Part shown: in pieces, positions 9,390-64,000 of the stretch
Position numbering within the stretch: the first letter of the stretch is position 1
Layout: every line of letters begins with the position of its first letter
Assembly (NCBI GenBank): GCA_025558095.1
Contig: JAIVFI010000016.1
Coordinates: 677,508-741,507, forward strand
From: Hyaloraphidium curvatum SAG 235-1
Taxonomy: Eukaryota; Fungi; Monoblepharomycota
Length of the DNA stretch: 64,000 bases
Reading direction: 5' to 3'
Translations under genes and position numbers: made by a program
The notes under the pieces: model-generated
The model's database searches: none
Seen by the model: the letters and a program-made list of their open reading frames with translations, nothing else
Told to the model about the DNA's origin: nothing

Positions 9390-10223
9390 CTACTGAGCCG
9401 TCCACGCCCCGTCCATCGTCACCGAGCTCCCCGTCATGTTGTCCGCCGCCGGCGAGCACAGGAACACGACCATCGCCCCGACCTGCTCGGGGGTCGTGAA
9501 CGTCTGCGACGGGTGCTTCTCCGAGACCAGCTCGAGGGCCGCCTGCTCAACCGGAATGCCCTTGGCCGCCGCCCGCGCGTCGATCTGCTTCTGCACCAGC
9601 GGGGTGAGCACCCAGCCGGGGCACACGGCGTTGGAAGTGACGCCACTGCCGGCCGTTTCCAGCGCGATGACCTTGGTCAGGCCGATGAGTCCGTGCTTGG
9701 CCGCGACGTACGCCGATTTTTCGGCGGACGCGACCAGGCCGTGGGTAGACGCGATGTTGATGATGCGGCCCCACTTTCGGGCCTTCATTCCCGGCAGAGC
9801 GGCCCGGGAAGTGTGGAACGCCGACGACAGGTTTATCGCGAGCACGGCGTTCCATTTGTCCACGGGAAACGACTCGACAGGAGCCACGTGCTGGATTCCC
9901 GCACAGTTGACGAGGATGTCGCACTTTCCCAGCCGCGCCTCGGTGTCCTTGACCAGGTCCGCGCAGGACTCGCCGTCCGACATGTCAGCGGGATTGTACT
10001 CGACGCGCACTCCGCGCGACTCCAGCTCGGCACGGAACGCCTCGATCTCGTTGCGGTCGCCGAAGCCGTTGAGCATAACGTGGGCGCCTTCTGCCGCGAG
10101 CGCCCGTGCTATTCCGTGGCCGATGCCTCCTGTGCTCCCACTGACGCACGCGACGCGCCCTTTGAGGCTCATCGCGGCGGCCGTGCTGCTGAAGCGGCGC
10201 AGAAAGCGTGGGCCGGCTGGCAT
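9390..10223 (-). CDS. bdhA: D-3-hydroxybutyrate dehydrogenase (bacterial BdhA-type SDR) with putative mitochondrial presequence
   Basis: SGSTGGIG, LNGFG, AGIQHVAPVESFPVDKW, KSAYVAAKHG, CPGWVLTPLV, DGAWTAQ*; intronless; Arg-rich N-terminal extension. Confidence 0.9.
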   Translation of the reverse strand: MPAGPRFLRRFSSTAAAMSLKGRVACVSGSTGGIGHGIARALAAEGAHVMLNGFGDRNEIEAFRAELESRGVRVEYNPADMSDGESCADLVKDTEARLGKCDILVNCAGIQHVAPVESFPVDKWNAVLAINLSSAFHTSRAALPGMKARKWGRIINIASTHGLVASAEKSAYVAAKHGLIGLTKVIALETAGSGVTSNAVCPGWVLTPLVQKQIDARAAAKGIPVEQAALELVSEKHPSQTFTTPEQVGAMVVFLCSPAADNMTGSSVTMDGAWTAQ

Positions 10224-10767
10224 AAGCGGGCGCAGGGCCCGGACAAGCCAAGGGGGACAGCTGATGGGGGACGGCGAGGCGTAAGGCGTCGGTTTGTTTA
10301 CTCGGTCGCAAGGACACTTTGAACCTGACAGGAAACCCGCGACAGGCTAAAATGGACATCAACGTGGAGTCAAATGACAGTTCAAGCTAGGAAGAGAAGA
10401 GTAGCTCCCATCCAAGTGCTTCGAGATCTAGTCGAGGGGGCATGAGAGCCTACGATCCTGCGTAACGGCCGGACTGATCGGGTATGGCCGTGTTCGCTCG
10501 GGCATTGTCCGAGGTGGCAAGACTTAGCTGTCCCGAGGGTCATCTTGCGGATGGACGGGCAATCGGCCTTTTCGAATGAGGACTCAGCGACTGGGGCGGG
10601 GTCGTCGGGCGTTAGAAGGGACCGACTAGAGGCGCACCGCCCCGCCTATTGCCGACACCCGTCACCCGCTCCCCCCACCCGTCGCAATGGAGCTGCGGCG
10701 GAACGGACCGACTGCGCCCCGCCCCGCCTGTGGCCGACGCTCGTCAGCCCGCTCGCCCGCCGTCGCG

Positions 10768-12011
10768 ATGTCGCTGCGGCGGCTTCGGCCGGCCCTTTGT
10801 GCGCTGGCGCTGCTCGCACTGAGCGTATCCGCGGCGGCCGATGAACCCCCCGGGCGCCCGCGGGCGGTCCTTGGCCGGGCGGCGACCGGCGAGTTCCTGC
10901 CCCTCACGGCCGTGCCCGAGGGCGCGAGGACCGTCACGCTCGGCGTGCAGGTGATCAACATTTACGGCCTCGATATCGGGGCCTCGGACGTGGACATGAC
11001 CGCTTATGTCTGGGCCAATTGGGGCCGCAACATGTCGGACCCGACCCAGACGCTGGAGTGGGTCAACTCCATCTCCGGCGGCGCCTCGGTGCAGCGCCTA
11101 TCGGACGTGCCCGCCACCTACCCGGACGGCTCGTCCTGGCAGGAGCTGAAGGTTCAGGGCACCTTCTACCAGGCCTTCAACCTCCGCTCCTTTCCTCTGG
11201 ACAAGCAGAACCTCCAGATCGTCATTGAGGACCTTGCCCAGACGGCCGACTCCGTCGTGTATCTCCCCGACACCCGGGGCTCTGGCTATGATCGCTCCAT
11301 CTCCGTCCCCGGCTGGAGCGTGCGCTCGATGACGATTGAGCCGTACCTGCACGACTACGGGACCAGCTTCGGCAACCCTGAGGGCAACACCACGCAGCGG
11401 TACTCGGCCATCGTGGTTACCGTCGTCATCCAGCGGGCCAGCAACACCTTTGCGTGGAAGGTGGTGCCGCTGTGTTTTGTCCTCATCGTCGCCTGGAGCG
11501 CGCTGTTTGTCCACCCCAAGATGGTCGAGATGCGGCTCGGCCTGTGCGCCACCGCGCTCTTGACCTGCATCTTCTTGCAGCAGACCTCGATCGACGCGGC
11601 TTTGGTCTCGGGGCTTGTGCTCATGGACCAGCTCTACATCACCGCCTACGTTCTTATCATCTTCACCTTCCTTCAGGTTCGTTCCTTGAATTTGCTTCCT
11701 TTCTGCTCTCTCGGAAACTGACCCCATCCCTCCAGTGCCTCTGGGACACCGCCATATTCCACGCCATGGAGGACCGCGAGGACGATGCCCGCCGTCTTCT
11801 GCAAGGCGAGGAGGTCAAGCCCGACGACGCCTCGGACATCCCGCTGTGGTCCCTCACCCCCGCGCCGCGGCTGCCGACCTCGTCGCTGCTGGACCGGATG
11901 TCCTCGCGCATGGCGATCAGGAACCTGAGGAGGATGGACTACATCAGCGTGGGCTTGCAGGTGATTGCGGCGATCGTGACGTTTTCGGTGCTGTGCTCGA
12001 CGGCGCCGTGA
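10768..12011 (+). CDS. Cys-less (Pro-loop) pentameric ligand-gated ion channel subunit, 2 exons
   Basis: Signal peptide; FNLRSFPLDKQNL loop; PGW; pre-M1 Arg; M1 Pro; M2 RLGLCATALLT; M3; intron 11677-11735; M4 RMDYISVGLQVIAAIVTFSVLC. Confidence 0.88.
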
Positions 12012-12126
12012 GCCTGTCGGTTTGTCGGCGGACGGTGGCTGAGGCACGGTTGGAACGGGCTCTGTCGACTTCTTTATTGGAATTGCTGTATCGCTGCTAT
12101 CATTTAGACTTCTTTGCCAGGAATGA

Positions 12127-12528
12127 GGCACCTTCCTCGATTTCCTCGCTGCCCATCTACCGCCGACCCTCGAAGACCTGGAGTTCCTGCGGACGGACAT
12201 CCCCGACGGGATCCTCTCCAAGCTGCTCCGCGCCATCCCGAACCTTGTCAGCCTCTGTGCCGCCCTCTCTTCGGCGCCCCTCCAATTCTCCCGGGACCTG
12301 GCCGCGATCCGCCGCCTCAAGAAGCTGAGCTCTCTGGACGTCAGCCCGGGCGATCTACCGGGCCGGGAGGAGCTGCAAGAGCTTCCCGATGCGGCCGGGG
12401 TGATGCACCGGCTGCAGGAGGTGGTGCTGGGTTTCGCAGCAGGGGAGTTAGAAGAGTGCGGGTTGGACGTGGAGTGGGTGAGGGAGGCTTTCGGCGGGGT
12501 GAAGGTCTCGTTTGCGTGCGACGAGTAG
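12127..12528 (+). pseudogene. Headless C-terminal fragment of an LRR (F-box/RNI-like) gene
   Basis: 134-codon frame directly after an in-frame TGA (12124-12126): LPPTLEDLEFL...IPNLVSL...LKKLSSLDV...LQEVVLG...FACDE*; no start codon or N-terminus. Confidence 0.6.
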
Positions 12529-46589: not shown

Positions 46590-47247
46590 GGCACAGCCGA
46601 TTCCTTGCTAGACTAGACGCGGTGATGCCATCGAGTACTACAGCATACAGATTTGCCGCTGATCGTGCGATGGATGCGGGACGGGGTGGCTGGAACGGGT
46701 GGCGCTTCGACGGGAAGATTCTTCTCCGACCTCGCGCCCTGTTGTGCTTGACCCCCATCTTCCTTGTGTCTTCGCCCGCGCAATATGGCACCCACATCTT
46801 CCGAGCCCGACGAGCGAGTCGTGCTCCCGCACCTGCGTGCGCTGTTCGACGCGAGTATGCCGCAGAGGCCGGCCTCCATCGCGCGGCAGATCTTCGAGGC
46901 CATGGCGGGATGGCCGGAAAGACCGGGCTGCCCGTGGATCCCGGTCCCCGATCCGCGCGTCCGCCCCTCCGACCCCCGCGCCCGGCACCCCACCCCGTCA
47001 GACTGTCTTGCAATCGACTATGCGCTCGGATACCCCGTGTGCCTGCCGCCATTTGGCACGACGACGGCTACAGAAGCGACGGGTCCTCGGGGGAATGCGC
47101 ACGCACCAGCCCGCGCAACACCCCCTGCCTGGGCCGTGCGTCGCCCCCTCCCCTGCCCCGTTCCATTCCGGCTCCATGGGCCCCCGGCGACCGCGGTGAA
47201 CGATGCCGGCGCACCTCCCGGCGCCGTCGCGGCTCTCGGCGTGGGCG

Positions 47248-48600
47248 ATGCTGCGCCCCATCCTGGCGCTGCTCTCCTGCGCGGCGCTGGTGTCCCTGCC
47301 CCCGCCGCGGCCGGTCCGTGCGGGGGCGCTCCCCGTCCCCGGCAGCGGGGCGCGATGGACCGCGGAACCCGAGGGCCCCGAGCTGCTCAGCCTGAGGCGC
47401 AACGCCTCGTCGTGGCTCCGCGCGTCGGTCGGCGCCTACGCGCGGCACTACAACCCGCTCCCCCTTCTCCGGGCCGCCGACGACCCCCGATGCCCGGCGC
47501 CTCTGGCAAGCGCGCTGCGGGAACGGGCGAAGGGGGTGGAGCGGGCGGTCAACGCGACGGGGGCGGCGCTTCTCCGGCTCGCGGACAGGATCGCCGCGCC
47601 GGGGTGGCAGCCGCCCCCCGGCACCGCCTTCGCGCCCGCCGCGCACGTGCTGCCGGTCGACGCGGAAAAGGCCTGCAGGACGGGCACCCGCGATTCGGCG
47701 GAGAGGTTGCTGGCGCACCTGGCGCGGGACTGGTCGGACGGGTGGGAGCACACGGGGGACGTGGTCGCCCGCGAGGTGCTGCCGCTCATCGGGCGGCACG
47801 TGCCCAAGGGGGGGAGGGTGCTTGTTCCCGGTGCGGGGATGGGCAGGCTGGCGTGGGAGATTGCGCGGATGGGGTACGCGGTGGAGATGAACGAGTGCGT
47901 CCGCCTCCAGCTTCCCGATATTGGCACGGGCTGACGGGCCTTGTTCGACGACAGATGCTCCCCCCTCGTTGCCCTCGCCGCCCACGCCGTCATGTCCCGC
48001 ACCTCGACCCCCGAGCTCCTGCACCCCTGGGCGCACCTGCACCGGAACCTCCGCCACGGCGACGCGCGGGACCTCCTCGAAACCGCCGCCGTGCCCAACC
48101 CGCTCCCCGCCCTTGCCTCGCAGCAAGCAGCCGCGCCGGTCGCGGTCCGCGTGGGCGACTTCCACCGCCTCTACCCGGCCGACTCCGCAAACCCGGAGGG
48201 CAGGTTCGACGCGGTGGTCGCGTCGTACTTCCTCGACAAGGCCGGGGACGACGCGCTGGATACCATGCTGCGGATGGACGGGGTGCTGCGGGAGGGCGGG
48301 GTGCTGGTGAACGCGGGGCCGGTGGATTGGAAGCGTGGGTGGCTTTGCCGACCGGCCGGACGGGGTGCTGACCCTCCCGGTTCCCCGCTTTTCGCGCGAC
48401 GATCGATCGGATGGATTGCAGACGGCGCGGAACCGCTGCTCTCGTCCGACGACCTCGCGCTGTTCTGGTCCTCGCGGGGCTTCTCAAAACTGCACCGCGG
48501 GGAGGTCGGGGCCGACTACTCCCGCCGGCCGGGGGCGACGCTGGCGCAGGAGGGGCACGGGGTGGCGGTGCTCGCCATGCGCAAGCGGGGTGGCGGGTGA
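47248..48600 (+). CDS. N2227/CARNMT1-like SAM-dependent histidine methyltransferase with N-terminal hydrophobic segment, 3 exons
   Basis: RDWS, VLVPGAGMGRLAWEIA, NE, GDF, DAVVASYFLD, GGVLVNAGP. Confidence 0.85.
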
Positions 48601-63865: not shown

Positions 63866-64000
63866 TTAGGTTAGGTTAGGTTAGGTTAGGTTAGGTTAGG
63901 TTAGGTTAGGTTAGGTTAGGTTAGGTTAGGTTAGGTTAGGTTAGGTTAGGTTAGGTTAGTTAGGTTAGGTTAGTAGGTTAGGTAGGTTAGGTTAGGTTAG
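63866..64000 (+). repeat. Telomere (TTAGG)n
   Basis: About 27 tandem TTAGG, G-rich strand running 5'->3' toward the window end, a few variants distally. Confidence 0.97.

Follow-up and report, generated by a model that had tools for sequence, protein, structure and literature searches.

A Cys-less pentameric ligand-gated ion channel subunit in the early-diverging fungus Hyaloraphidium curvatum, best explained as a domesticated bacterial channel

No pLGICs (pentameric ligand-gated ion channels) were detected in Fungi in the inventory of Jaiteh et al. 2016 (PMC4795631), which a 2024 survey repeats for other groups, and our search of the openly searchable, non-subscription literature turned up no paper after 2016 that reports such channels in fungi at large, or in chytrids, Hyaloraphidium or Gonapodya in particular. 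A gene in Hyaloraphidium curvatum raises the question of whether a fungus carries such a channel after all and, if so, from where it was acquired. The stretch analysed here (hereafter, the window) is the final 64 kb of a 741-kb contig. It terminates in a (TTAGG)n telomere with 28 repeat copies, which lies 52 kb from the gene in question (hereafter, the window gene). The original prediction had read the gene as an intact Cys-less pLGIC of a probable fungus, and the host is indeed fungal: four NCBI proteins of H. curvatum (Fungi, Monoblepharomycota) match loci in the assembly at 100% identity. We propose, with a probability of roughly three in four for the reading as a whole, that the window gene encodes a Pro-loop receptor subunit whose family derives from a single bacterial transfer followed by duplication and eukaryotic adaptation. 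The features on which the argument draws are as follows, with positions counted in the window.

10615–10782, forward strand: tandem duplication (~82 nt) that copied the 5′ leader together with the start codon and left two ATGs in frame, at 10687 and 10768
10643–12120, forward strand: span transcribed in a public run; the 5′ limit is the end of the RNA-derived contig, and adapter letters follow the 3′ end
10768–11676, forward strand: coding part of exon 1, with 303 codons for the putative signal peptide, the extracellular domain, M1, M2 and most of M3
10768–10839, forward strand: signal-peptide-like N-terminus, as read from the sequence (basic n-region, hydrophobic core, AAA ahead of an acidic mature end)
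10885–11439, forward strand: predicted extracellular beta-sandwich, residues ~40–224, with no cysteine (model, Foldseek, composition)
11191–11202, forward strand: Pro-loop motif FPLD, residues 142–145, where the family scarcely varies at P143 and D145
11440–11508, forward strand: M1 helix in the model, residues 225–247, with the invariant pre-M1 Arg223 ahead of it
11524–11589, forward strand: M2 pore helix from alignment and model, residues 253–274
11590–11595, forward strand: start of the M2–M3 loop, from the alignment
11596–11676, forward strand: exon 1 part of the M3 helix in the model, residues 277–303
11599–11601, forward strand: codon of Ala278, in place of the family proline and just within the modelled M3 helix
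11677–11735, forward strand: spliceosomal intron, 59 nt, phase 0, GT..AG, with a CTGAC branch site
11736–12011, forward strand: exon 2, with 91 codons and the stop, which holds the last part of M3 (LWD motif), the M3–M4 loop and M4
11763–11927, forward strand: cytoplasmic M3–M4 loop of ~55 aa, first acidic and then rich in Pro and Ser, inserted with respect to the bacterial relatives
11934–11999, forward strand: M4 helix from the alignment, with the pre-M4 motif RR.D..S...Q ahead of it; helix 364–397 in the model of paralogue P0002
12009–12011, forward strand: stop codon

Frame +1 is open from the ATG at 10768 to 11676 and resumes at 11736 after the intron, whose GC content is 51% compared with 65–66% in the exons. 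An RNA-derived contig of 1441 nt in the public run X1 is 100% identical to the window gene at a depth of 204, while its neighbours among the X1 contigs aligned to 10400–12400 reach depths of only 3 and 6.5. This contig aligns in two pieces, 10643–11673 and 11733–12120, and skips exactly the 59 nt with GT..AG ends that had been predicted as the gene's one spliceosomal intron. The window gene is therefore transcribed and spliced as predicted, and it is intact. The tandem duplication at its 5′ end, whose copies pair 10632–10667 with 10714–10749 (83%), 10679–10701 with 10760–10782 (87%) and 10615–10627 with 10701–10713, produced the earlier in-frame ATG at 10687, which lies within the transcript, so that the product has either 394 aa (from ATG 10768) or 421 aa (from ATG 10687); the start of paralogue P0002 matches the position of ATG 10768. 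Across 238 codons aligned with its closest paralogue, on contig C13, dN/dS is 0.30, and the window gene has been under purifying selection since the two split.

Six loci of the window gene's type occur in the genome, on contigs C16 (the window gene), C13, C27, C15, C12 and C31; the window gene is one of six paralogues and not a unique gene. All six appear intact and all fall below the Pfam cut-off. Four of the paralogues are found as NCBI records under the name "hypothetical protein", and the best named match of the window gene is likewise an H. curvatum "hypothetical protein". The intron sits at the end of M3 in C16, after residue 69 in C13 and at the start of M3 in C12, while the C31 paralogue has three introns at other positions and those on C27 and C15 have none. 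The M3–M4 insert of the fungal copies, taken to be cytoplasmic, is 45–130 aa long.

Because the closest relatives of the window gene are bacterial, as described below, bacterial contamination or misassembly had to be considered. The gene nevertheless has a spliceosomal intron that is removed in RNA, lies 52 kb from the telomere of a 741-kb contig, and has a GC3 of 0.88–0.91 (window GC, 0.68) like the host's GC-rich coding style; its five paralogues are on other large contigs, some of them with introns, and its eukaryote-style M3–M4 insert is missing in every bacterial relative. On the strength of the intron, the RNA, the telomere and the paralogues we reject contamination, to which we give a very small probability, and the window gene is genuinely integrated in the fungal genome.

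Searches, alignments and models treated each exon on its own, and the four-helix architecture as a whole was assessed on the paralogue P0002, a protein from the databases that is 69% identical to exon 1 and whose residues 305–397 are 51% identical to exon 2 (E = 1.2e-19). In the Pfam scan, the Neur_chan_LBD family (PF02931) on which the pLGIC reading could be checked did match exon 1, but at 16.8 bits stayed below the cut-off of 26; Neur_chan_memb (PF02932) had no match in exon 1, and no Pfam family matched exon 2. The lowest E-value that any of seven fungal-type members gave with PF02931 was 0.0029. The Pfam failure arises because the whole bacterial-type clade is divergent, and it contradicts neither the fold nor the profile homology. 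When exon 1 was compared with the PDB by phmmer, it matched pLGICs only, among them a GLIC–GlyR chimera (5e-5) and ELIC (1e-4), and a family profile built from 59 relatives, matching over the full length, reached 9e-32 with GLIC chimeras, 1e-27 with ELIC and 1e-23 to 1e-25 with GLIC.

Structural models point to the same superfamily. The AlphaFold2 model of exon 1 (pLDDT 89, pTM 0.80) has ten strands followed by three long helices (residues 225–247, 253–274 and 277–302), and a Foldseek search with it returned only pLGIC chains, with GLIC at the top (5e-18, probability 1.0, TM 0.62–0.65). The full-length model of P0002 (pLDDT 88.7) has helices at 229–251, 257–278, 289–334 and 364–397 and reaches Z ~23 across ~280 residues when aligned with chains of GABA-A, GluCl, GlyR, the alpha7 nicotinic receptor and GLIC; the structural alignment covers residues 52–398, M4 included. 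Taking these models and profiles together, the predicted pLGIC fold stands, and the window gene is a gene for a Cys-less pLGIC (Pro-loop receptor) subunit with a predicted beta-sandwich and four-helix fold, of which M1–M3 appear in the exon 1 model and M4 is conserved in exon 2, as the claim of four transmembrane helices had it.

The hallmark residues agree closely with what had been read from the DNA. Residues 1–24 have the composition of a signal peptide, as proposed, and in the model form a helix at 6–19 followed by a linker with pLDDT ~50. The only cysteines in exon 1 are residues 11, 236, 260 and 267, so that the extracellular domain, with the predicted FPLD at 142–145, holds none, and the Cys-loop disulfide pair (13 residues apart, flanking FPxD) was not found there; the protein is therefore classed as a Cys-less Pro-loop receptor and not as an animal-type Cys-loop receptor. 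In M2, the predicted Glu at -2′, Arg at 0′, Thr at 6′ and Leu at 9′ correspond to E254, R256, T262 and L265. In the alignment of 59 relatives, R223 and R256 are invariant and L264, L265 and T266 nearly so, and an acidic -2′ residue is common to all six fungal copies and the bacterial relatives. The motif HDYGT.FG is strongly conserved at the start of loop C and Glu154 in loop B is nearly invariant, which suggests a putative ligand-binding site common to the whole family. The M3–M4 loop, earlier estimated at ~50 aa, comes to ~55 aa in the alignment.

The M2–M3 loop proline is important for gating in the channels that have been studied. Kept in at least 90% of the relatives, it is replaced by Ala278 in the window gene, in line with its reported absence, and this substitution gives some reason to ask whether the gene, though expressed, yields no gated channel, the copy being either in decay or confined to serving as a modulatory or structural subunit. 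The duplication of 82 nt that adds an upstream in-frame ATG could be read in the same way, as could a two-copy complex prediction of exon 1 that scored 0.01 against a mark of 0.32, a low score that is uninformative either way. Both exons are nevertheless open, the splicing is precise, the dN/dS of 0.30 is that of a constrained gene, all other hallmark residues are kept, and the RNA contig is deep relative to its flanks. Moreover, while the C13 and C31 paralogues have the proline, those on C27, C12 and C15 lack it too, and its absence is therefore a trait of the lineage and not a lesion of the window copy. We consider a non-channel product quite unlikely and retain the reading of a maintained receptor subunit.

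We searched for the relatives of this subunit exhaustively with HMMER in 1.84 billion representative proteins, which gave 2318 matches, 63 of them below 1e-30. Besides the fungal paralogues, the best of these are 35–43% identical to the window gene's product, are 320–375 aa long and have a very short M3–M4 link; overall, the nearest relatives are bacterial short-loop proteins with 35–50% identity, and all organism-named matches in a profile word search were bacterial. A scan of species-representative prokaryotic genomes (GTDB) returned nothing when exon 1 alone was used, but an alignment-based scan confirmed 169 loci in at least 10 bacterial phyla, which include Actinomycetota, Chloroflexota, Chlorobiota, Cyanobacteriota, Pseudomonadota, Ignavibacteriota, Verrucomicrobiota, Planctomycetota and Myxococcota. 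These loci are largely of lake and river origin, and the contigs of the relatives examined are bacterial, with genes for PIN toxins, radical SAM and MFS proteins, or for PntAB, PQQ dehydrogenase and SoxYZ.

Neither the HMMER search nor the profile searches found an orthologue in any other named fungus, and no published description of one was found; nothing in these searches pointed to a family already widespread or described in fungi. Eukaryote-like proteins with a long loop were absent, outside the Hyaloraphidium group, from the best 150 of the 2318 matches. The other long-loop members are the environmental proteins P0162, P0169, P0293 and P0294, which belong to the subtype of the C12 and C15 paralogues. 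For two environmental proteins of this subtype the source contigs were located, and both have split genes; on one lies a squalene epoxidase whose pieces are 54–76% identical to H. curvatum genes, and on the second a fungal-type mannosyltransferase (63% identical to the H. curvatum gene) and a glutamate-receptor-like gene. We read these contigs as probably coming from uncultured relatives of Hyaloraphidium, which makes the window gene's family older than the species.

The same genome holds a second, eukaryote-type pLGIC family. A PF02931 search of the assembly found nine further stretches over the cut-off, at 57–88 bits, on contigs C6, C1, C39 and C37; several lie in adjacent pairs and two of the three on C37 may be one gene, giving at least 7–9 loci. 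The locus examined, on C39, is Cys-less, has a WTPD loop-A motif and PER...LT in M2, and matches GABA-A delta and glycine receptors at 1e-23, and the Atlas clusters nearest to it are eukaryotic wherever a taxon is recorded. The profile of the window gene's family matches two eukaryote-type loci at 1e-9, and the two families lie far apart in trees. Together with the six loci of the window gene's type, the Pfam-positive family brings H. curvatum to at least 13–15 pLGIC loci of two origins.

Phylogenetic trees were built with IQ-TREE (LG+C20+F+G4) from 84 rows and 351 columns. The eight eukaryotic rows form one clade (support 78/73; 98/84 for the seven without C31), which lies inside a clade of 35 rows (98/96) whose eight named rows are all freshwater Actinomycetota, and this in turn lies within a clade of 58 rows (96/80) with Chloroflexota and Chlorobiaceae. 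The fungal placement was unchanged (SH-aLRT 97) when three eukaryote-type pLGICs of H. curvatum were added as an outgroup, which attached elsewhere, beside a long Myxococcota branch. The fungal copies are thus nested among bacterial sequences in the best trees, but AU tests left the alternatives unrejected: forcing the fungal clade outside the 58-row clade cost 18.4 log-likelihood units (p = 0.105), and forcing it together with the eukaryote-type outgroup cost 5.6 units (p = 0.15). The nesting and the rooting consequently rest on branch support and taxonomic distribution. A separate origin of the C31 paralogue, which a FastTree split had suggested, was rejected because the mixture-model IQ-TREE trees join all fungal copies, and two transfers are not claimed.

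The unrejected placements leave some room for vertical retention, in which a pLGIC of the opisthokont or fungal ancestor was lost in nearly all other fungi and the bacterial likeness reflects slow evolution or a transfer from eukaryotes to bacteria. pLGICs are patchy in protists, where loss is frequent (PMC4795631), and the presence of the C12/C15 subtype in uncultured Hyaloraphidium relatives places the family before the species. Yet an identity of 35–50% to proteins of Actinomycetota contrasts with a structure-based ~17–18% to solved animal and bacterial channels, and the family profile reaches the eukaryote-type pLGICs of the very same genome at 1e-9 only. The nesting of the fungal clade in bacterial sequences (98/96), the spread of the family over at least 10 bacterial phyla and the lack of long-loop proteins beyond the Hyaloraphidium group, within the best matches given above, also speak against retention, as do the two intronless paralogues and the unrelated intron positions of the others. 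We regard vertical retention as unlikely.

Transfer from a bacterium to a fungus is, by comparison of the sequences, probably the origin of the window gene's family, a case that depends jointly on five points: the branch support that the best trees give, the extent of sequence identity with proteins of bacteria, occurrence in many bacterial phyla as opposed to one fungal lineage, a minimal architecture of bacterial style with a lineage-specific insert, and unrelated intron positions. An actinobacterial donor appears most likely from the same comparison, although it is less certain than bacterial transfer itself. Of the two origins originally offered, domestication or ancient retention, the first is favoured for the window gene's family by its bacterial nearest relatives and its nesting in Actinomycetota, and the second finds a better candidate in the eukaryote-type family.

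We conclude that this early-diverging fungus has an expressed and selectively maintained Cys-less pLGIC subunit that is best explained as a domesticated bacterial channel, for which channel activity, ion selectivity, candidate ligands and stoichiometry are proposed. The source would have been a freshwater bacterium, most likely an actinobacterium, whose short-loop pLGIC without introns entered the Hyaloraphidium lineage in one transfer. Duplication to six loci and adaptation to the eukaryotic cell would have followed, with the copies acquiring a signal peptide and the high-GC3 codon usage of the host, gaining introns independently and taking on a cytoplasmic M3–M4 insert of 45–130 aa. The putative N-terminal signal peptide would put the protein into the membrane, where it may form homopentamers, or heteropentamers with the five paralogues. 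An acidic ring at -2′ sets cation selectivity in GLIC, and by analogy a cation-selective pore is predicted for the window gene. The pore might open when a small extracellular ligand or ion, perhaps protons, an amine or a divalent cation, binds at the subunit interface.

If the bacterial origin is true, the six copies form a natural series in which a minimal prokaryotic channel gained the cytoplasmic loop, the introns and the subunit diversity that mark eukaryotic receptors. More tentatively, the Hyaloraphidium lineage may have re-run in miniature the step from prokaryotic to eukaryotic receptors, adding a signal peptide, introns, a cytoplasmic domain and six subunits, and may now use the products as ionotropic sensors of dissolved compounds beside a GABA-A/glycine-receptor-like family; we hold this to be possible but doubtful. 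These genes also invite the question of what fast ionotropic receptors allow a planktonic, non-motile fungus to detect. The at least 13–15 pLGIC loci of one fungus, in two unrelated families, stand against an inventory of none in fungi, and since the window gene's family is invisible at Pfam cut-offs, domain-based surveys would miss it. Small, probably homomeric-capable and microbe-derived, such channels are also attractive for structural and ligand-discovery work.

The closest known proteins by sequence are those of the bacterial pLGIC clade of freshwater Actinomycetota, Chloroflexota, Chlorobiaceae and Cyanobacteria MAGs (for example loci L024, L042 and L044 and proteins P0040 and P0072), at 35–50% identity. 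The motifs that they have in common with the fungal gene are the YPLD/FPLD Pro-loop and PGW, HDYGT.FG ahead of loop C, an acidic residue at -2′, TALLT..FLQQ within M2, LVLMD where M3 begins and RR.D..S...Q preceding M4, and like the fungal genes they mostly escape Pfam; both groups are known from sequence alone. The bacterial proteins are 310–375 aa long, have an M3–M4 link of ~10 aa and keep the M2–M3 proline, whereas the window gene has the 59-nt intron, the insert of ~55 aa, alanine for the proline and two N-glycosylation sequons.

Among channels of known structure, the best match is GLIC, the proton-gated channel of Gloeobacter violaceus (PDB 3EAM, 4HFI and many others; Foldseek 1e-17, TM ~0.62; VIA Z 23 for the paralogue model), likewise a Cys-less Pro-loop receptor with an acidic -2′ residue and no classical aromatic residue in loop B. 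The identity is only ~17–18%, however, and GLIC has no cytoplasmic loop and keeps the M2–M3 proline (P250). ELIC of Dickeya (Erwinia), which is amine-gated (PDB 2VL0, 2YN6), matches exon 1 at 1e-4 and the family profile at 1e-27. In loop B, the Glu through which ELIC touches its agonist amine corresponds in the alignment to the window gene's nearly invariant E154, while the aromatic residue next to that Glu corresponds to Leu, and ELIC shares the 9′ Leu yet differs at -2′ and in the selectivity region. The pocket residues of ELIC and GLIC thus offer weak leads on the ligand, and an amine for the fungal channel is no more than one such lead. The protist Cys-less Pro-loop receptors (Jaiteh et al. 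2016, PMC4795631) and the eukaryote-type pLGICs of H. curvatum belong to the same superfamily and are likewise eukaryotic genes that have a signal peptide, introns and a longer M3–M4 loop and lack the Cys-loop disulfide. The eukaryote-type pLGICs of H. curvatum differ from the window gene's family in that they pass the PF02931 threshold (58–88 bits) and lie far from it in trees, where the window gene's family sits among bacterial sequences.

Outside the window, at loci L094-L098, the H. curvatum assembly encodes another pLGIC family, which exceeds the Pfam Neur_chan_LBD cut-off at 57-88 bits and whose stretches frequently lie in adjacent pairs.

Second-family pLGIC stretches in the H. curvatum assembly, by contig; Neur_chan_LBD above cut-off in every row
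C6:45168-45806 and 47131-47763
C6:861959-862591 and 863219-863872
C1:280170-280802 and 281617-282228
C39:459761-460393
C37:166327-166948 and 167882-168319

The C39 copy, which is Cys-less and carries a WTPD motif, has the GABA-A delta and glycine receptors of animals as its nearest matches (1e-23). The second family looks to be eukaryote-type and separate from the family of the window gene.

In an environmental contig from Logan SRR26194948 (L093, 10001-13450), which we read as derived from an uncultured relative of Hyaloraphidium, a pLGIC gene of the C12/C15 subtype of the window gene's family adjoins a gene whose product includes the channel domain of ionotropic glutamate receptors (PF00060). 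A 190-nt contig from X2, a public run labelled with a different organism, is 99% identical to exon 2 of the window gene (window 11759-11948), with two differences (e.g., T>C at 11798), a sequence match suggesting that another sample contains a close strain or relative.

The 5′ leader and start codon of the window gene are tandemly duplicated (~82 nt; window 10615-10782) and, because the duplication took in the start codon, the gene has two in-frame ATGs, at 10687 and 10768, both spanned by the transcript contig. Directly upstream lies an intronless ORF:

window 9390-10223, minus strand, short-chain dehydrogenase/reductase (adh_short, 4e-54)

The window and the contig terminate in ~28 TTAGG copies (window 63866-64000), a telomere-like five-base repeat that differs from the usual fungal telomere repeat, TTAGGG; the window gene therefore lies ~52 kb from a chromosome end.
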